64,000 nt of DNA from Ylistrum balloti (Eukaryota). Made by a program: the position numbers and the translations under genes. This document shows positions 50,440-63,938 of this stretch, piece after piece (position 1 is the first letter of the stretch; each line of letters opens with the position of its first letter). The stretch spans positions 62,001 to 126,000 of the forward strand of contig NW_026782404.1 in NCBI RefSeq assembly GCF_031769215.1, given 5' to 3'. The notes under the pieces are model-generated. The model was given only the letters and a program-made list of their open reading frames with translations, was not told where the DNA came from and did no database searches.

Positions 50440-51954
50440 TTATATATTGTTACAGCGTCTCTGAAATGCTTTGTAGGTTTGCTCTGCTTGTGAATTTTCC
50501 CTTGACCATGGGTATTTTAGTTGACATCTGCTCTCTTCTGCTTGAATCTTTTTACGTGCTCTTTTCGTACGTCCATACACTTTGGCATGCCTCTTCATAT
50601 TTCCCAAGACAGTAATTTCTAAATGTGCCTGAGCCTCAGCAGGCCTTGGCTGTATGGGCAGCAGTTCCAGCTCCTCAGTTGTTCGGTTGACAAATACCAC
50701 TTTTACAGAAGCATCTTTTTGAGTACCAGATTTATGTTTATGCATGATGTGAACTCTGCAGCTTGGGAAGCTGTAACTGAGCAGGTTACAATAGGGACAG
50801 AAATACAATGCCACTTGACTCTTTGAACTTGGTAAATAGCCTTTTAGATGCTGTGTTTTTTTCCAATGTTTATGTATTTCTGAAGCACGACTAAATGACA
50901 TATCACATGTTCTACATGTGTTAACAACTGGGAATGGGATTGTTTTAAGGGAAGCAACATTTGCCAAACTGTAACGGGTAGAAATATTATTATTATGATA
51001 CAACTGGTAGTGTTTTGCACATGACCATATTGATTCGTGTATTTGGTTACAAGATTTCCATGGACACATTGGCACGATATTGTTAACAAGAGCAACATGC
51101 TTGTCTGTAGATGTCATTAGAATGCTCTCCTTGAGAATAGATATTGCCTTACCAGTGTTCTCATCTGACATTTGAATTTTAGCTAAACTTGCTGCATTAT
51201 GTTTTTTGTCTTTGAAATGACATTTCATCAAATCTGCAGCCTCTTCATTATGATGATGTAGCTTGTGTGGCACCACAAAACCACAATAATCACACACCAG
51301 ACCTTGACTGAACTGAACACGTGGTCTCTTGGATGGTCCACTGCCTTCTGTATTGCTGCTTGAGTATTTCCTTTTAACTTGTTTGTTCTTTGATTTTCTT
51401 GTGTTTGATTCCTCCCTAACTTCAACTTCATCGCTGTCATATGTCAGGTCTACCTGTTGCTCAGAGTCAGATACAACTATATAATCATTTAACTCTTTGT
51501 CGTAATTTCTTGTCATGTATATTTCATTGTCTTCTCTGGAGCCTCTTATTGAATCTGTAAAATCTAAATAGCCAGGTTCTGAAGATCCTAAAGCATCTTC
51601 ATACCATAAATTGTTATGAAGAACTGGTTTTGTTTGAGACATATCATTGAAGGACTGTGAGGAAGAATTTCTGAAATTGTTTGAGTTGCTGTCCCCATGG
51701 TGTTCATTGTATCCATCAGACCATGGAAAGGTATATCTGTACTTCAAAGCATCTTCATGCCATAAATTGTTGTGGGGCTGTGGAGTTGGTATATAGCGAG
51801 AGCGGAATTGGTTCCCTCTATGGAAATTTGAATTCAATCCACATTTAAACAAGACTTGTTGTATATGACGGTTGTTTGAATTCCTAATGCTGTATGCTAG
51901 AGTGTCTTGGGCTCGCTGTATCATGCGATGCGAATAAAAACCGTGGTAATCCAT
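50440..51954 (-). CDS. C2H2 zinc-finger protein with tandem SIM-like motifs (ZNF451-like, tentative)
   Basis: Long open exon (acceptor TTCCAG at 52019; first in-frame ATG 51954). Four C2H2-type fingers (CDYC..HFKDKKH, CPWKSC..HYQLYH, CRTC..HWKKTQH, CPYC..HIMHKH), SIM-like YIVVSDSE and VDLTYDSDE, basic NLS-like PSKRPR. Candidate 5' UTR exons at 52255-52201 and ending at 53653. The 3' end is uncertain (stop at 50440 or donor at 50453). Confidence 0.75.
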   Translation of the reverse strand: MDYHGFYSHRMIQRAQDTLAYSIRNSNNRHIQQVLFKCGLNSNFHRGNQFRSRYIPTPQPHNNLWHEDALKYRYTFPWSDGYNEHHGDSNSNNFRNSSSQSFNDMSQTKPVLHNNLWYEDALGSSEPGYLDFTDSIRGSREDNEIYMTRNYDKELNDYIVVSDSEQQVDLTYDSDEVEVREESNTRKSKNKQVKRKYSSSNTEGSGPSKRPRVQFSQGLVCDYCGFVVPHKLHHHNEEAADLMKCHFKDKKHNAASLAKIQMSDENTGKAISILKESILMTSTDKHVALVNNIVPMCPWKSCNQIHESIWSCAKHYQLYHNNNISTRYSLANVASLKTIPFPVVNTCRTCDMSFSRASEIHKHWKKTQHLKGYLPSSKSQVALYFCPYCNLLSYSFPSCRVHIMHKHKSGTQKDASVKVVFVNRTTEELELLPIQPRPAEAQAHLEITVLGNMKRHAKVYGRTKRARKKIQAEESRCQLKYPWSRENSQAEQTYKAFQRRCNNI

Positions 51955-53229
51955 TCTGTCACAAGTATCAACAGCTTCCTTTATGTGATTACAGTGACTG
52001 ACCTCATCAGTGATGTTTCTGGAAAATATACAACACCAGTAATTATTGCAGAATTTCTTTGAGTGAGTCCAGAACACCATTTCCAAAATTGTAAACACAA
52101 TTTACTTTTTAAGAAACATGTCAGAAAAATGGTTAAACTTGTACTAGTAAAAATACTTGTAAATTTCAATAAGTGCCATAAAAAGCTGGAGATTACTTAC
52201 CAGGTTGTAAGTATTGTACAATTTTACTCACACAAATACACTGATACACTTGCATCTACAAAACCTTTGACTTGTTTTTGTTTGCTTGTTTGTTTTGTGT
52301 TTAGTAACAAATAAATTTACCTCAATTTTGGCAAGATATTTTTAAAAGCATACTTTCATGTACAGTATGATTACATACATGCTAAGGCATGTTTTTCAAG
52401 GAGATTTTTTCAGCAATTTGATTACTTGTTCTAGCCATTAACAAATCTGGATAATGTTGAAGGCACTATATATTTCTCTGGACCCAAGTTACCTGTGGAC
52501 TTTCCTTTTTTCAGATTGAACACACCTGTATATGCATAATGATCCTGCAGAAAGATAGATACTGCTTTGTGTTACAAATTTGTTACACAAATGGGGGATA
52601 ATTTAAGATAGAAACACATGAAATTAATTTACACCGTTGCGACAAGAAATGGCATAATTTTTTTGGCATGGCCTTATAACCAATATGAAACTGTAAAATT
52701 TGCATAAGAAATATTCATTTCTGTTAACCAATTCTGTGTTAAAATGATAATTTTAATAACCATTTTTTCACCTATGAGTACAGTTTTCCTTTGGGAACAT
52801 TAGAGCAAATGTCATGGGTGAGCATGAATGACATGTGTTCTACTTTTAGTTACATTATAAAATATCAGCAAAGGAAATGAAAAGTTTGTGATTTCAACTG
52901 AATCATTCATTTTTGTGTACAATTGTGCAATGTTTATTTGACCATCGAAAAAATATGGATCCCTTTTTCGTTGCAAATGCTTAAAGAAAAAAGAACTTTT
53001 TGTGTTTCTATTTAAAATTATCCTGCATTTGAGTAATACATTTACCACTGAAATCAGTCTACCTGTCACTGATCAAATGCCGGATAATTACGTATCATAA
53101 CAGTGCACTTTGTCATAAGCTTTAAGACAAGTTTTTTCCGGTTCGGGACTTATTAAAGTCCTCTATACCAGACTAAAAAAAAGTAATACAAAATATTGAC
53201 ACATTGAAAATATTTGTTATTTTACAGCT

Positions 53230-53885: not shown

Positions 53886-56800
53886 ATGGAGTTATCACAA
53901 GTAATTCCTACACTTACCGCAGCTGTTGAGACAATAATGAATCCTGCTGCGAGTGCTGTTGATAGAATGACAGCACACAAGGTAAAAAAATAAATAACTA
54001 TTTGGTAATTGATCACACAATATAAATATGTAAATATTATATATTTAACAGTGTAAAGGAGAATGAAAGCACATGTAAAAAACATATGATTTATAACCAG
54101 TTGTAATTCGCATCAGCCATTTTCTCTCGCTAACATTAGATAACTAGAAAGTGCATTTTAATTAGTGTTTCAATGCTGTATATCCTCAATTTATTGTTTA
54201 TACACAGATCTGCGAGGAGTTCAAGGAGACATCCCCTTTATGCATTGAATGCGGACTAGCACTTTCCCAGAGACAAAACTCTTCAATTGTCAGGCATTTT
54301 GGACTTCAACTGCTAGAACATGCCATCAAGTAAGATGTACCAGTGTAGATACACATCATTATTTGTTTTACTTAATGATCTCATTTCTATAGGCACAATT
54401 ATTATGTATGACATTATTTAGTTGTCCTCTTGATTGATAAAATAATCAAATAAAAACAGATTGTTTACTTTTAGTACCTGTTCCAAAAAATCCACAGTTT
54501 ATTAATCAGTTACATCTACAACCAACAACTCATTGTACTCTTTTTATAAAGTGACCACTGTCATGTATCCCCAATGTATGGTCACCTACGTATAGTGACC
54601 ACCATCATGTATCACTGTAGTCTGAAGAGCTCTAACTGTCTATCCGCACTTTTATTTTGTCTTGGTCGTGGACTAACAGTCAGAATTCCATCTTATATAT
54701 AAACACTGAATACTCATGCAGTATTTTATGTAGTTTACAACAGTATGATGGTTATAAATTATGCATCAATGGAAAAGATTAAACATTTTCCCACAAACTT
54801 GCAAGTGTGTTAAAGCAATTAAATGTTGTAAACCAAGTATTTCTATAAATTTTCCTTGATAAGTTTACTTTCCAACATATTCACAATAGTGGCACTATGC
54901 AGAATCTCTCTAGACTTGCAGTTGTAAATCTACCCTTCCTGCCAATGTCATGAGAATTTACTCTTTTGTTATTTACATTCTATAAATGATAAAAGTAAAA
55001 ACATGCTGTATAAACTTTAATAATTTTCCATCTGATAAGAATGAATTCATAATATTTTGAATGTAGGTATTTATAATTTTTGTTTTGTTTTTTTGTTTTT
55101 TTTTTTTTTTTGCTAACAGATTTAGATGGCAGGTATTATCTCTGAGTGAGAAGGAAGTGCTGAAGAGAAGTGCACTGGATTTCATTGCAAAGGTAATGTA
55201 TCCTGGCCTTCTAACACAACATATTGATCACAGCAAAGTTATTTCCATCTTGTATTTGGCTTTCTCTGATGTGTTTCTTTATTAAGGTACAACCATGTTT
55301 ACATTGATCTAAACTTAATTATTCTTTCTTGTGTATTAATTAAGACAGTTATATTTTCACAAATCTGGACATTTTATACATTTTTTAAGTAATGTATATG
55401 GAGCTATTTTGTATTTTTTTAAAGATAGTTATAAATATGTTTTTCAGTGATGTAAATTGAGCTATTTCATATTTATGGGACATGTATATATTTTTCAGTG
55501 ATTCAGATGGAGCTATTTTTTTTATTTATGGGACAGATTTCTATTTTTTTTTCAGTGATGTAGATGGAGCTTTTTCAGTGATGTAGATTAAGATATTTTG
55601 TGTTTAGGAAAAAGAAACACTTTCAGTGATGACGAGGATATTTTGTATTTAGGGAACACCTACACTTTCAGTGATGTATATGAGGATATTTTTTATTTAG
55701 GGAACAGCTAAATTTTCAGTGATGAAGATGAGGATATTGTGTATTTAGGGAGCATCTAAATTTTTCAGTGATGTAGATGAGGACATTTTGTATTTAGGGA
55801 ACAGCTAACATCTTGGAGGAAGAATATCACATTAAGGATGGTGTATCTCGGATCACAGTTGAACTCATCAAACGAGAGTGGCCACAAAACTGGCCGTTAC
55901 TCCTCAAAGACCTGTATGACCTGTGTTTGATGGGGGTAAGTACATATACTATTTCATAATGAATTTTTTCTTTTTGGAATGTTTCAAATGATTATGATAT
56001 TTACAAAGATAACTCTTCCTTTTGTATTCAGTTTCTGTGAAACCTGTTACTGTTTATCACCAACAGGTGTACATGTGTACTACACCCTGTAGTATATCAA
56101 AACACAAAAATTAGTTATTACCCTTTTATGGACCCATCAGTTTTGAATTGCCGTTATACAGAGACAGCTATCTTAAGGATCTATGTGGCATTTTCTATGA
56201 TATGTTTAATAACCATACATATTTTTGTAAAGCCGACCCAGACAGAACTGGTCCTGAAGACCTATCTACGATTGGCAGAGGATGTGGTGGTGTTTCAGAC
56301 CATCCCTGCAGTACGACGACGAAGTGTGATGCAGTGCTTGACAGCAAATATGGGGGACCTGTTTCAATTGTTCATCACCCTCTTGCAACAACATACAGTA
56401 AAGGTAGACTCAATCGCACAATATTAGTGTCTACCAATGTTATAAGACTTCAAATTGAAAAGTGGAATAACAATCTTTCATACTTTAATATGGACAATCC
56501 AGAAAATACATTCAGTTTAACAAAATTTATATGAAGAAAAATTTACTTTTAAAATAAGTTGCTAAAATTTGCATTTATAACAATCCAACCATATAGTTTG
56601 AACTCTATTATTTACTGTGAGAAAAATGAATGGAGATAGGTATCATTTGGCAAGATATTTGACAATAACTTCAGATGGCTGTTGTAGGTAAATGAGGACA
56701 CTCCTGATGCACGAGTGGTCAGTCAATCCAACTGTAGAGTCAGTCAAGCTCTACTGACCACCCTTGCCGGCTACCTTGACTGGATCAACATGGACCATAT

Positions 56801-59800
56801 ATTTTCTCAGAATGCCTTGCTGCTACAGATTCTTTGTTTGTTACTAAGTGACAGCAATCTCCAACTTTACGCAGCAGAGTGTTTGCTGATTATTGTCAGT
56901 AGAAAGGTTGGTGGTATTTTATACATCAACACAGGTAAAGATGTATCATTTTCATCTAAATGTTACTTTAGTGATTTGGTACAATCCTAAATTTTTATAG
57001 CAATTTTACTTACTTGCACTGATTTGAAGACAGTTTAAAAAGAGAAGAATAGAGTTATTAGAATGTGAATATATCAGTGCTGTTTTCTTTGTTTAAGGGC
57101 AAGGTTGAAGATAGAAAACCCCTCCTGGTACTGTTTAGTGAGGATGCGATGTCAATCATCTGGACAACCACTCTGTAAGTACTGTACACGTTTGTATAAT
57201 TAACTCATTCACACTGTAATTACACTGTACATGTCTGTAGTACACATCAGGTCCACCACTCTGTAAGTACTGTACATGTTTGTATAATTAACTCATTCAC
57301 ACTGTACTTACACTGTACATGTCTGTAGTACACATCAGGTCCACCACTCTGTAAGTACTGTACATGTTTGTATAATTAACTCATTCACACTGTACTTACA
57401 CTGTACATGTCTGTAGTACACATCAGGTCCACCACTCTGTACACACCTGTATCTATTTACTGTACAAACCTGTATATCTAAACTCTACACACCTGTATCA
57501 CTACACTATACACACCTGTATCACTACACTGTACACACCTGTATCACTACACTGTACACACCTGTATCATTATACTGTACACACCTGTATATCTAAACTA
57601 TACACACCTGTATCACTACACTGTACACACCTGTATCACTACACTGTACACACCTGTATCACTACACTATACACACCTGTATCACTACACTGTACATACC
57701 TGTATCACTACACTGTACATACCTGTATCACTACACTGTATATACCTGTATCACTACACTGTACACACCTGTATCACTACACTGTACACACCTGTATCAC
57801 TACACTACACTGTACACACCTGTATCACTACACTGTACACACCTGTATCACTACACTGTACACACCTGTATCACTACACTGTACATACCTGTATCACTAC
57901 ACTGTACACACCTGTATCACTACACTGTACACACCTGTATCAATACACTGTATATACCTGTATCAATACACTGTACATACCTGTATCACTATACTGTACA
58001 TACCTGTATCACTACACTGTACACACCTGTATCACTACACTGTACATACCTGTATCACTACACTGTACATACCTGTATCATTACACTGTACACACCTGTA
58101 TCACTACACTGTACATACCTGTATCACTACACTGTACACACCTGTATCACTACACTGTACATACCTGTATCACTACACTGTACATACCTGTATCATTACA
58201 CTGTACACACCTGTATCACTACACTGTACACACCTGTATCACTACACTGTACACACCTGTATCACTACACTGTACACACCTGTATCACTTCACTGTACAT
58301 ACCTGTATCACTATACTGTACACACCTGTATCACTGGGATGTACACACCTATATCTCTGCACTGTATATACCTGTATCATTACACTGTACACACCTGTAT
58401 CACTACACTGTACACACCTGTATCACTACACTATACACACCTGTATCACTACACTGTACATACCTGTATCACTACACTGTACATACCTGTATTACTACAC
58501 TGTATATACCTGTATCACTACACTGTACACACCTGTATCACTACACTGTACACACCTGTATCAATACACTGTACATACCTGTATCACTACACTGTATATC
58601 AGGCATGTGAAATTTCCGCCAATTGGCGGATTTCCGATTTTTTAACAAAAAAATCCGATTTTTAGAAATATTTTTCCGATTTTTTTCGTCGGTAAAAAAA
58701 TCCGGATTTGTGGTGTCCGTTTTCGTTTTGCAGTTTATACTTGCCTGAAGTAGATCGTAGAAACGCTTGGATCAACGTAGGTAGTCAAAGCATCAAGTAC
58801 ACACTGATTTAAAGTGCCCGTATGTTACATATCGACCTTGACATGATAATGTTATGTTTTAAAAGGACTTAAGGCAATATGAGTCACCGGAAAGATATAA
58901 TAGAACGAGGTAGTGTGAAGGACGTTGATGTCGGCGTGCGAAACGCATGGAAATGGAGTTGGCTAGAAAAAGAAGTTGAAGGCAGTTTGTTGTCAGCGTG
59001 CATCTACAAAATTGAAGAAGCTGGGAAAGCATATTGTCGGCTTTGCTCGAAGGAGATAAACTATGCCAGTAGGGGTTACAAGACCATAGAGGCCCATGTT
59101 AAATCAGAGAAACATCGAAAACACAAGGAAGCAAAAAAGAGCAGTTATTCTTTGGCCGGTAAGTTGTGTTGCAGTTTATTGTTTTCATTCGAAAAAACGA
59201 AAAAAAAGCAAATAAAAAATTTAATCCCAAATAAAAATTAAAGACGATAATGATAAGATTTGGTATAAAACGGCTAAAAAATATAAATATTTGATATCAA
59301 TAAAAACAGCTAAGCAAGATGATATAAATAACTGTACATGTATTTAATAAATATAAATAAATAAAATTAAAACGTATTCTAATAAATAATACAAAAATTA
59401 AAAGGCTCAGTGTTATTTTCCCGTATTCCCTATTAAGATTTTATTTATAGAAATATTTTATAATTCTTAAAAGTTTATAATTAAATCAATGCAAACTTGG
59501 GCCTAAATTAAAACATATTCTAATAAATAATACAAAAATAAAAAGGCTCAGTGTTATTTTCCCGTATTCCCTATTAAGATTTTATTTATAGAAACATTTT
59601 ATAATTCTTAAAAGTTTATAATTAAATCAATGCAAACTTGGCCCAAGTATACAGGCATCAGCTCAGTATTTGTTCTTTTATATTTTACAGGATTATTTTC
59701 ATCTGGTGCCAGATCTAATGACACACATGAACCTTATGGACTACACCCATCGCTGAACGGAAAATTGTCAGGCTCAGTCACCAGTCAGTCCAGTGACATC

Positions 59801-62800
59801 AAAGATGCACCCAAGTTGTTAGTGCCAGTCAACGACAGACTTATAAATATGGAAGCGACTATCCTTGGTTTTCTTACTGAAAATAATCTCCCATTCAGCT
59901 TGACAACAGATTTGATTGATCTGACAAAAAAACTATCAAAAGATACCAAGGCTCTTAGTGAACTACAGATGAACAGAACAACAGCTTCATATAAAATGAC
60001 CTTTGGATTAGGAAAGACATTAATGATGAACTTGACGGAAATTTTAAGAATTTCAAAGTTTTCACTAAACATCGATGAGGCCACTAGTGATAACTTTCAC
60101 AGGGTGTTGGCTGTTCTAGTTTCTTATTTCTGTCCAACAAAGAAAGAAATTGTTGTTAATCATTTAGCATCCTTAAGTGTAATAAAAGTTGACAGTGCCA
60201 CTCTTTATAATGAACTGGTAAATGTTATTGAAAGTAACAACATACCATGGACAAACCTTATGTCAATATTAATGGATTCATGTAATGTGATGAGGGGATC
60301 AAAGTCTGGCCTAGAAGTTCGTATTCGAAGGGAAAAGGCACCACACTTGTTGGATATAGATGGGGACTCATGTCATCATGTCCATAACGCTACAAAGGCA
60401 TTTTGTAAACCATTTGGCTATGTTGTAGAGTCACTGTTTAATGATCTACATAATGATTTAAAGTGGTCTGCAGATTTGAGAGACTTTATGCAAGAAATCT
60501 GTGTCATTTTAGGTGTTAAATACACAGCTCCCCTCAGGTTTGTAAACCACAGATGGCTTTCAGTGTACACTGTAGCAGTTGACACATTACGTCTGATGGA
60601 TGTTTATAGTGTTTTCTATGCTGGCTTTATCACACCAGACAAAAAGCCAAAAGTGTTTCCTATTGTACAAGAGATCTATAGAAGGATAGGCGTAAGTGAT
60701 GCAGCAAAGGAAAGAGTAAGAGAAATCCACTTATCTCTGTCCAAAAAATCGTTGACAAAGGATGGACGAGATAGAAAAGACAGAATCTTAGGCAAAATTT
60801 TTGATGAGAGAATGCTGATCAAACTTGTCTTGAATTTGTACAGTAGTGTTCTGCCTCTGTTGAAAAACTTCACTCTTCTGTTTGAGATGAAAGAACCTCT
60901 AGTGCATATACTACATGATAAGCAACTTGAACTTATCAGGGAGTTCTTGGATTGTTTTATTAAACCAGAAAAATTACAGAATATTACAGCCAGTCGCCTT
61001 GCAAAACTTGATCTACACAGTAAAGATATGCATCTGAAACCAGTTCACATGTTCATGGGTGTTAATGCGTTGCGCACTGTAAAGGAAAATATCAAATCTT
61101 ATATAGTAAGAAGCTTCCTTGAGAACCTTGAATCTGCTTATGTTGCCAGTGGTCATGTATTAAAAACAAAACTGCCTATTGGAAACTCACTGCTACAGAG
61201 CCTTTCAGCTATAGACCCTTGTGCAAGGGGCCACTCCCTTACATTGCAGTACCTTCAGAACCTTGCGCTGAAAGTTGATAATGTATTATCTGAAGAAGAG
61301 AAGAATCAGTATGAAAGAGAATTAAGAAGGTACCAACGAGATGAAAAGTTGCCAGAATTTGAGAACATGAGAATAGACACTTGGTGGGCAGATGTTCAAA
61401 TGAAAGGACAGTATCCTGTCTTAAGCAAGATGGTATTGTCCTTGTTGACCTGTTTCCATGGTCCACAGGTGGAAGGCTCATTCAGCATGATGGGGGACAT
61501 CATGGATCCTAAATCTTCAAGAATGAAGATTGAAACCTATTCAGCAATTCAAACTGTGAAGTCCACATTACAAGCACAGAAGAAAACTGCTGTGGAATAT
61601 TTTTCACCTCATGACTTCCAAAATAATGCACCACAGAGGAGACTTCTTAATAACATGAGGAGTGCATATAAGTCATACAAGTGTGAAAAAGAGAAAGCCA
61701 AAGAACAGGAGGAACAGAGAAAGAGAGAATTAGAAGTGAGAAAAGCAAATGTTGAAACAAAACGAAAGGCTTCAGAACAGTCAGAAAGAGCTTCCAAAAT
61801 TGCACGTTTGGCTCACAAACAACTGATGATGAAATCTTCAAAAAAAACCAGAAAAAAGTCTAAAAAAGGGACATAATTTGAGTGAAGTTCGTGCTACATT
61901 TTACTGTTACAGTGTAAATATATTACAATCTAAATATATTACAATATTAATGTGAAAGTGTACATATATAGTCTCTAGCTATATTGTGAAAAGTAATTTG
62001 TGAACTGACAAAACAATTTAGATTTAAACTACAGTTGGACATATGTGGAACATGTATTTACTTTTTACAATTTAACAAAACACATTTAACAAACTTAAAC
62101 ATTTTTCTTGCAATTGGATTACACTCAAGTATCTCATTCTGTGGAACATTAGTTGTGAACTGGCCATGGTAAGTGTATAAATTGTCATGTTGATGAAAAT
62201 TTCAAACAGTTTTGTTGAGTTTTTTTATTGGTATTACACTTTATTATGGCAAGAAATGCATGCCAAAATATCTGATGGTATACCCCTTAAGTGGCTAGAA
62301 ATGCATCCCTGGCAGTCTAAATTTTCAAAAATTTTCCGGGGGAGGCCCCCCGTATTACTTTTCAGACTTTTTCAAAAAATACCACTCACATGCCTGGTAT
62401 ATACCTGTATCATTACACTGTACATACCTGTATCACTACACTGTACACACCTGTATCACTACACTGTACATACCTGTATCACTACACTGTATATACCTGT
62501 ATCATTACACTGTACACACCTGTATCACTACACTGTACATACCTGTATCACTACACTGTATATACCTGTATCATTACACTGTACACACCTGTATCACTAC
62601 ACTGTATATACCTGTATCACTACACTATACACACCTGTATCACTACACTGTACACTGTACACTGTACACACCTGTATCACTACACTGTACACACCTGTAT
62701 CACTACACTATACACACCTGTATCACTACACTGTACATACCTGTATCACTACACTGTACATACCTGTATTACTACACTGTATATACCTGTATCACTACAC

Positions 62801-63938
62801 TGTACACACCTGTATCAATACACTGTATATACCTGTATCATTACACTGTACATACCTGTATCACTACACTGTACACACCTGTATCACTACACTGTACACA
62901 CCTGTATCACTACACTGTACACACCTGTATCACTACACTGTATATACCTGTATCACTACACTGTACACACCTGTATCACTACACTGTACACACCTGTATC
63001 ACTACACTGTACATACCTGTATCACTACACTGTACACACCTGTATCACTACACTGTACACACCTGTATCACTGGGATGTACACACCTGTATCAATACACT
63101 GTATATACCTGTATCACTACACTGTACACACCTGTATCACTGTGATGTACACTCTTGTATTGCTATATTATCCATGTCCAAAAGTCATCATCTTGTTCAA
63201 TTTTGAGTCTGAGTTGGCAAAAAGAGGCCAATAGACAAGCCATCTTTGATTTTGATAATTGAAAACTTTTTTTTTTTTGGTATGTCAATATTCTATTTCC
63301 TCCATTTTTCATTTTTACATGAAAAGAAAGACTGTCATCTCTAGGTTTTTCTTTGTGCATGTTTTAATTTTGAGACTGATTGAAAAATAACAAAATTTGA
63401 AACATGTAGTCCTCATTGAAACCTTAGAACCTAAAAAAAAGGAAAACAATAAAAATTGCATAGATTCAATACAGATCATAAAGTCGTGACATCAAAATCC
63501 CTCTGGTATCTCTTGGTTTTTTAAAAATATTTCAGTTTCAACACATCATCAACGTATATAAGGAGACATTAACTCATTTATTTCTTTTTCTCTTATCAAC
63601 AGAGCTGCAGAGCAAGCCTCTCACAATGATTACTTTTATTTGTTCCTGAAGAGACTATGTCAAGTTTTAACAGAACTGGGTAAACAATTGTGTGCTATGT
63701 GGGTGAGTATACTAATGCTGTTTGTAATCAGTGTTAAGTAAAGTTGTTTACTTGTGTAAATATACTAATGATCATCCTAAACAATGAAGGCGAAAAATAT
63801 TTTTATGTGATGTATGGGCTCTATGACATTGTTGATGAATTATTTTGGTTTTAGGGTCACTTACCTGATGTAAAACAACCAGCCACCTTTGAGAAATATC
63901 TAGAGGCTCTTCTAGTGCTAACAAAATTCCCCAGTCAG
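53886..63938 (+). CDS. XPO5: Exportin-5, coding exons 1-9 (continues beyond the right edge)
   Basis: Exons 53886-53981, 54208-54329, 55120-55192, 55798-55935, 56233-56403, 56688-56906, 57098-57174, 63603-63702, 63855-63938, phases consistent. Motifs IVRHFGLQLLEH, LEEEYHIKD, KREWPQNWP, TQTELVL..YLRLAEDVV, LAGYLDW, AAECLLIIVSRKGKVEDRKPL and FLKRLCQVL match XPO5. Confidence 0.95.
55385..55810. repeat. ~48-bp tandem repeat whose unit includes the XPO5 exon 4 splice acceptor
   Basis: TTTCAGTGATGTAGATGAGGATATTTTGTATTTAG|GGAACAGCTA repeated ~8 times, degrading leftwards. The last copy is the real acceptor (55797). Confidence 0.88.
57167..57440. repeat. 88-bp tandem repeat (3 copies) containing the XPO5 exon 7 splice donor
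   Basis: ACCACTCT|GTAAGTACTGTACA at 57175, 57263 and 57351; a fourth ACCACTCT|GTACAC at 57439. Confidence 0.93.
58879..61876 (+). CDS. hAT transposase, 821 aa, 2 exons (BED-type ZnF + RNase H-like DDE + C-terminal dimerisation region)
   Basis: Exons 58879-59158 (GCC G|GTAAGT) and 59691-61876 (TTTTACAG|GA) join in phase. CRLC..HVKSEKH finger, FSLNIDEATS (D), ILMDSCNVM (D), SCHHVH, HRWLS, WWA, QVEGSFS (E). Confidence 0.92.
59365..59642. repeat. 141-bp tandem duplication within the transposase intron
   Basis: AATTAAAAC(G/A)TATTCTAATAAATAATAC...AATGCAAACTTGG at 59365 and 59506, nearly identical. Confidence 0.9.

Follow-up and report, generated by a model that had tools for sequence, protein, structure and literature searches.

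The window analyzed here is a stretch of 64,000 nucleotides from Ylistrum balloti (NCBI RefSeq assembly GCF_031769215.1, contig NW_026782404.1, positions 62,001 to 126,000 of the forward strand); the contig is referred to below as C547, and other contigs of the assembly are likewise given as C numbers. At window positions 58600-62396 lies an element of 3,797 bp that carries a two-exon transposase gene, sits within an array of 23-bp repeats and follows exportin exons on the same strand. The element is very probably an autonomous class II (cut-and-paste) hAT transposon of the minority type with 6-bp target-site duplications (TSDs), called hAT6 by Repbase, and a very young and recently mobile one. 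The features of the element and its target are as follows, with tandem repeats taken from Tandem Repeats Finder (TRF) and TIR standing for terminal inverted repeat.

57430-58593 (TRF 57430-58596), no strand: 23-bp tandem (satellite-like) array, left part of the target; TRF period 23, 50.5 copies
58594-58599, no strand: left TSD copy, GTATAT; read from the sequence, its 6-bp length validated at other loci
58600-58610, + strand: 5' TIR, CAGGCATGTGA; the same letters in all copies
58611-58720, + strand: left subterminal region with six TCCG motifs by motif count, candidate transposase binding sites
58879-59158, + strand: transposase exon 1, 280 nt (93 codons plus 1 nt), encoding a CCHH BED-like zinc finger; from the open reading frame (ORF)
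59159-59690, + strand: transposase intron, GT...AG, with a 141-bp tandem duplication (x2) at 59364-59641; from TRF and homologue colinearity
59691-61876, + strand: transposase exon 2, 727 codons plus stop, encoding the catalytic core, an all-alpha insertion domain and the hAT dimerization domain; from Pfam and AlphaFold (AF2)
62331-62352, + strand: where about 60 bp are missing from the window copy alone, within a hypervariable, G/C-rich 3' subterminal segment; from the right-end alignment of all copies
62386-62396, - strand: 3' TIR, TCACATGCCTG in + strand letters; exact reverse complement of the left TIR
62397-62402, no strand: right TSD copy, GTATAT; read from the sequence
62403-63141 (TRF 62397-63141), no strand: 23-bp tandem array, right part of the target

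The TIRs are perfect over 11 bp, and a mismatch at position 12 ends the repeat. TIRs of hAT elements are short, about 10-25 bp, and start with the consensus YARNG; here the start is CAGGC, which agrees at positions 1-4 and has C rather than G at the fifth. The 8-bp flanks of the element are unequal (CTGTATAT versus GTATATAC). All of this, the 11-bp TIRs, the GTATAT on both sides and the non-matching 8-bp flanks, had been described in a first-pass annotation of the window and was re-read in the sequence, as was the statement that excision together with one GTATAT gives a normal repeat unit: the deletion regains the in-phase array unit CACTACACTGTATATACCTGTAT, which occurs five further times in the array. 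GTATAT is itself a recurrent variant of the array unit (11 of about 83 units). Because the target is a tandem array with a recurrent GTATAT, the pair in the window is by itself weak evidence for the length of the duplication, and the 6-bp length was therefore taken from other loci. The ends of the element are not a matter of chance, since six other places in the genome have these ends as their boundaries, at 97-100% identity. The 23-bp array belongs to a dispersed satellite-like repeat, with related arrays at dozens of loci at about 66-75% identity.

For the transposase, a two-exon gene model was supported. The GT donor at 59159 and the AG acceptor at 59689-59690 are both identical in all copies, and the exons are phase-compatible, so the joined frame runs through 821 codons to its stop without interruption. 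Support for the junction comes from homologue alignments that are colinear across it: exon-1 residues 2-93 match residues 3-96 of a sea urchin protein of 815 amino acids (P0018) and exon-2 residues 3-712 match its residues 99-796, and a further homologue (P0026) aligns over 4-96 (exon 1) and 97-798 (exon 2). The two exons were searched and folded separately, not as the joined 821-amino acid protein; exon-2 numbering plus 94 gives full-protein numbering. Exon 2 matched Pfam PF05699 (Dimer_Tnp_hAT) with 30.5 bits (E 3.1e-7, profile positions 1-82 of 84) against a gathering cut-off of 21.4 bits, and the same match was present in 23 of 32 homologues. Exon 1 matched the zf-BED profile with 16 bits (E 0.012), under the cut-off of 20.6; it holds a finger pattern CxxC...Hx5H formed by C53, C56, H73 and H79, and its residues 2-93 align with the N termini of about 29 homologues.

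The AF2 model of exon 2, built on the homologue alignment A1, had a predicted local distance difference test score (pLDDT) of 81.2 and a predicted template modeling score (pTM) of 0.70. Foldseek placed Hermes chains at all of ranks 1-10 (probability 1.0, E 1e-7 to 9.5e-6), with a template modeling (TM) score of 0.53 on the Hermes length. No transposase was matched among PDB sequences, whether the query was the single protein or a profile of 32 sequences. Among the 32 homologues, D128 (exon-2 numbering, as for the residues that follow) is invariant and lies on the beta strand E123-131, while D195, just past strand E189-193, and E594, where a helix begins behind the all-alpha insertion domain, are at least 90% conserved. 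W288 in HRWLS is also invariant, and C227, H228, H231 and N232, which form one block, are invariant or at least 90% conserved. The conserved blocks read NIDEATS, LMDSCNVMRG, DGDSCHHVHN, HRWLS and GPQVEGSFS. Judged from conservation and predicted topology, not from a residue-level alignment with Hermes, the DDE triad would be D222, D289 and E688 of the full-length protein. The PF05699 match above its gathering score, the Hermes-like fold and the conserved blocks support the protein as a hAT transposase. Both the hAT identity and the uninterrupted 821-amino acid frame put forward earlier stand.

Copies of the element were surveyed by a DNA search of the whole 648-Mb assembly combined with end-pattern searches. 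They are listed below together with their TSDs, which are given in element orientation.

C547 (window), 58600-62396: full-length copy; TSD GTATAT, inside the tandem array
C1091:19482-23309: full-length copy; TSD AAAATG (CATTTT on the contig strand); empty-site control
C521:8541-12416: full-length copy; TSD ATATAT, inside a TA run
C6:21791-25611: full-length copy; flanks without a match as they stand
C1229:1-2976: truncated copy; left flank that of C521, hence its other allele or a haplotig
C719:366116-366655: short element, 540 bp; TSD ATAGTTG, 7 bp
C696: short element, 550 bp; TSD ATACAG / ATACTG, one mismatch

Two of these loci could be compared with their empty sites. The flanks of the C1091 copy are contiguous on C896 at 99% identity; CATTTT is present once there (71292-71297) and on both sides of the element on C1091. 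The sequenced material is thus heterozygous for the C1091 insertion, or the insertion lies in one of two near-identical copies of the locus. The second comparison came from public sequencing runs. In run X5 a left element flank ends in ...ATGTTTACTC, and in run X1 a right element flank starts with TTACTCTGTG; both are foreign to every copy in this assembly. The empty site predicted from them, 35 nt with a single TTACTC, had one occurrence with 0 mismatches, at C559:218976-219010. With this empty site, the X1 and X5 flanks give a second exact 6-bp duplication and an insertion that is present in other individuals and absent from this assembly. X1 and X5 also contain other left flanks that are not known from the assembly, which suggests additional non-reference insertions.

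The 6-bp duplication is proven by the empty-site controls at these two loci, and three further loci fit 6 bp. Copy by copy, 6 bp prevails, with one 7-bp repeat and one irregular junction; the 8-bp duplication usual for hAT elements was found at no locus. The claim of a 6-bp duplication made in the first-pass annotation is accordingly confirmed, and the 8-bp TSDs with different termini that would speak against it were seen in no other copy, the ends being identical in all of them.

The state of the copies varies. The full-length copies are pairwise 0.13-0.50% divergent. Least altered is the window copy, whose frame is open and in which a synonymous change (CCT for CCG at 61219) is the sole private one in the coding sequence. 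The frame of the C6 copy is also open, with one private substitution, Y172D in exon-2 numbering. The C1091 copy carries a frameshift from a 2-bp deletion and a stop 12 codons before the end; the C521 copy has the same late stop and four substitutions, one of which (R212Q) alters a residue that never varies in the family; and the C1229 copy has a 1-bp insertion. Contigs from X1 and X5 show the majority states at 59543, 59199 and 61219. The short elements on C719 and C696 have one common internal breakpoint, at which the initial 331 bp run directly into the final 210 bp or so, and different flanks. Because one deletion is found with two flanks, the short element is a non-autonomous derivative that itself transposed. 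An empty allele or second haplotig was found in the assembly for none of the window locus, C6, C719 and C696, and a protein search of the genome revealed no other families of the same clade save one 39%-identical fragment on C962.

There are also isolated or diverged stretches that match the terminal 21 nt on one side of the element, right or left, at C384:1543025-1543045 and on C258, C340, C1346 and C180. They have no partner end within 1.5 kb and add no TSDs; the C384 match has about 75 bp of the right end and an internal 24-mer in common with the element. These matches may be remnants or a related non-autonomous family.

The two subterminal regions behave differently among the copies. On the left, six of the seven TCCG motifs of the whole 3.8-kb element fall within 58615-58716; the first 331 bp are kept in the short derivatives, and the left 400 bp are nearly invariant across copies. 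The TCCG repeats are plausible transposase binding sites. On the right, the private deletion of the window copy sits 45-65 bp from the end: the segment ACTCGCGCCTTCGGCG is gone from the window copy and present in every other copy in the right-end alignment, and contigs of run X1 have 67 extra letters at 62351/62352 relative to the window copy. Between about 45 and 110 bp from the right end, a stretch rich in G/C homopolymers and in part palindromic has indels that differ in every copy; the variation may be genuine or an artefact of assembly.

The family is very young and recently mobile, and probably still mobile. Its youth follows from the 0.13-0.5% divergence between copies, and its recent mobility from the heterozygous insertion, the non-reference insertions in other individuals and the deletion derivative present at two loci. 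This bears out the young age proposed in the first pass, and the presence/absence polymorphism suggested there as a check is seen in the filled and empty states at C1091/C896 and X1-X5/C559. Public runs under two organism labels contained about 95% of the element's sequence words. The junction of the window copy itself was not seen among the public-run contigs.

By analogy with Hermes, the spliced 821-amino acid protein would use its N-terminal BED-like finger to bind the 11-bp TIRs and the TCCG-rich subterminal repeats, and its C-terminal hAT domain to multimerize. Its RNase H-like DDE site (D222, D289 and E688) would excise the element, and the 3' ends of the element would then be joined to target phosphates staggered by 6 bp, so that gap repair would leave the 6-bp duplication. 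The window copy would have inserted in this way into the satellite-like 23-bp array, downstream of the Xpo1-domain exons of the exportin gene and in the same orientation.

A canonical 8-bp hAT element, with the GTATAT pair as a by-product of insertion into the 23-bp array or of mis-set ends, would account for the window locus, where the flanks are repeat units, GTATAT recurs and a 6-bp match at one locus is weak. It is refuted by the two empty-site comparisons, which lie in unique sequence and give exactly 6 bp; with identical ends in all copies and matching 8-bp flanks at no locus, we regard it as highly improbable. Even less credible is a domesticated, immobile host gene derived from a hAT element, of the ZBED kind. 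Such a gene would explain the long open frame with its intron and the position next to a host gene, but it is refuted by the TIRs and TSDs, the near-identical copies at unrelated loci, the filled and empty alleles and the mobilized deletion derivatives, and frameshifts or stops in several copies speak against purifying maintenance at each locus. The fixed, syntenic locus that domestication would call for was likewise not what we found, given the multiple copies and the filled and empty alleles.

Some observations do weigh against a uniformly 6-bp, intact and active element. The 7-bp repeat on C719 is not a clean 6-bp junction; it can be read as a 7-bp stagger, or as a 6-bp duplication plus one base retained at a 5' end. 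The junction of the C6 copy is irregular and shows no repeat as it stands. A paralogous, diverged site (C1164:22722-22795) tentatively suggests CTCCAA as the target of the C6 copy, a reading that calls for one mismatch and leaves 2-3 surplus bases (ATG) on the left side. The surplus bases (..ATG) equal those at the left flank of C1091 (AAAATG) and may be carried over from a donor flank. The window copy may be impaired in cis by its 3' subterminal deletion, and some single-base indels between copies could be assembly errors. The window insertion is unreadable in other individuals through its satellite flanks, and none of the public runs searched that held the element was an RNA run, which leaves transcription and splicing without support from them. 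Finally, pLDDT is below 50 around E594, which weakens the DDE assignment.

The two irregular junctions are the material for a variant in which staggered cuts vary between 6 and 7 bp, or in which end cleavage is imprecise and carries along 1-3 bases of donor flank. Excision of the Hermes type leaves one flanking nucleotide on the 5' ends, which counts in its favor beside the C719 repeat and the extra C6 bases. Only two junctions are irregular, however, five loci fit exactly 6 bp, and the C6 reconstruction was made from a diverged paralogous site rather than a true empty allele; we consider this variant unlikely, while leaving it some weight. It is also possible, although on balance doubtful, that all copies are inactive relics of a burst and that the window copy is immobile through its 3' subterminal deletion. 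The private deletion of about 60 bp near its right end, the disrupted frames or changed invariant residue of C1091, C521 and C1229 and the lack of the element in public RNA runs are what such a history would leave. Open frames in the window and C6 copies, insertions that differ between individuals and a divergence of at most 0.5% speak against such a history.

Upstream of the element lie the exons of a host gene:

55813-56990, + strand: host exons with an Xpo1 (exportin) domain; Pfam Xpo1 in three successive ORF pieces

The three pieces matched positions 2-36, 38-97 and 96-147 of the Xpo1 profile, and the Atlas neighbors of the upstream ORF pieces were Xpo1-domain clusters. The host gene next to the element therefore encodes an exportin and runs in the same direction as the element. 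Contig C547 ends about 2.1 kb beyond the window, about 3.7 kb downstream of the element, with no downstream exportin exon visible, and the remainder of the gene must therefore lie on another contig. Because the element is downstream of Xpo1-domain exons of a gene expected to be far longer, an intronic position in the exportin gene is likely. The first-pass annotation had placed the element in intron 7 of XPO5 and suggested that its splice sites could trap XPO5 transcripts; the exportin and the shared strand stand, and the assignment to XPO5, the intron number and the trapping of host transcripts by the acceptor of the element go beyond the evidence. At the end of the last visible exportin exon there is an 88-bp tandem repeat (57167-57441, x3.1, 98% matches) with GTAAGT-like donor motifs. 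Further upstream of the exportin gene, on the - strand at 50440-52098, an open frame of 552 amino acids has several C2H2-like Cys/His motifs.

A word-based protein search returned 198 relatives of the transposase at 37-50% identity. Those named are from sea urchins, clams, mussels, pycnogonids, a brachiopod, spiders, a nemertean and fishes, and most are labelled "uncharacterized" or "HAT C-terminal dimerisation domain" proteins; in about 5.8 billion proteins, the nearest transposases are at most 50% identical. No TIR and TSD pairs were found in 32 metagenome contigs encoding homologues, probably because these contigs end inside the elements. Pieces of the element were also seen in public runs under other organism labels. 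A run under a third label held a 700-bp piece of exon 2 at 99.3% identity, and one under a fourth label held pieces of exon 1, the intron edge and parts of exon 2 at about 96-98% identity. These pieces may be compatible with vertical descent or with horizontal transfer. That the family is a recent horizontal arrival rather than an old resident is a tentative idea, which we think improbable as it stands. It is prompted by a 648-Mb genome without older or degraded relatives except the one 39%-identical fragment, by nearest transposases that are at most 50% identical and taxonomically scattered, and by the near-identical or 96-99% pieces in runs labelled as three other organisms.

We know of no hAT element with 6-bp TSDs that has been shown to be active or studied biochemically. 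The present family supplies an open transposase gene, defined ends, a naturally mobilized mini-element and 6-bp integration verified at empty sites, and so offers a practical starting point for asking what sets a 6-bp rather than an 8-bp stagger in Hermes-like transpososomes. If the clade also proved distinct from the hAT6 of Repbase, the 6-bp stagger would have originated independently, with an intact copy in hand that could then be used to test what sets the duplication length in hAT transpososomes. The family is equally a starting point for a new hAT vector, its use in gene transfer being speculation. To the host genome the family is a transposon like others apart from its marked youth; one copy likely lies inside an exportin gene, and the insertion polymorphisms of the family could serve as markers.

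Compared with known systems, the element resembles Hermes of Musca domestica most closely in structure. Hermes (PDB 2BW3, 4D1Q and 8EDG) is the best structural match to the exon-2 model, and the predicted likeness extends to the RNase H-like core, which an all-alpha insertion domain divides, to the hAT domain at the C terminus and, as a candidate feature, to a BED finger at the N terminus. Sequence identity is 13-15%, undetected by hidden Markov model searches against PDB sequences, and Hermes duplications are 8 bp whereas those of the element are 6 bp. The Hermes residues to which the proposed triad would correspond are D180, D248 and E572. With TcBuster and the Buster elements it shares TIRs that start with CAG and, going by motifs rather than by a tree, the acidic 'DE-T/S' block of the first aspartate (NIDEATS in the element) and the RWLS motif; weak DUF4371 matches were seen in 4 of the 32 homologues. 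Buster TSDs are 8 bp with the consensus nnnTAnnn (PMC3499496), in contrast to the 6 bp found here, and the catalytic residues of TcBuster are not given in that source. Fold and domain order thus appear to be like those of Hermes or Buster-type hATs, with the difference lying in the stagger of target cleavage.

Elements of the hAT kind usually have 8-bp TSDs (PMC12730594), and families with 5- and 6-bp TSDs were named hAT5 and hAT6 (Kapitonov & Jurka 2007, Repbase Reports 7:1192-1204, according to the citation in PMC12730594), in line with the first-pass annotation. Both are placed in an animal hAT lineage that includes Blackjack, whereas hAT7, with a 7-bp TSD, is from rust fungi and groups with the Ac-like elements of fungi and plants, apart from those of animals (PMC12730594). 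The present element departs from the 8-bp rule as hAT5 and hAT7 do; it differs from hAT5 in the 5-bp duplication of the latter and from hAT7 in the 7-bp duplication and fungal/plant Ac-like clustering of that group. The literature searched held nothing specific on hAT6 in scallops. With hAT6 the element has in common a hAT-type transposase, a 6-bp TSD and an animal host, a likeness by TSD definition; the nearest proteins found are at most 50% identical and unnamed. Its hAT transposase and 6-bp TSD are the features by which hAT6 is operationally defined, which does not imply common descent with the hAT6 of Repbase; the element represents a new family of an already known minority type of hAT element and will not surprise a specialist.

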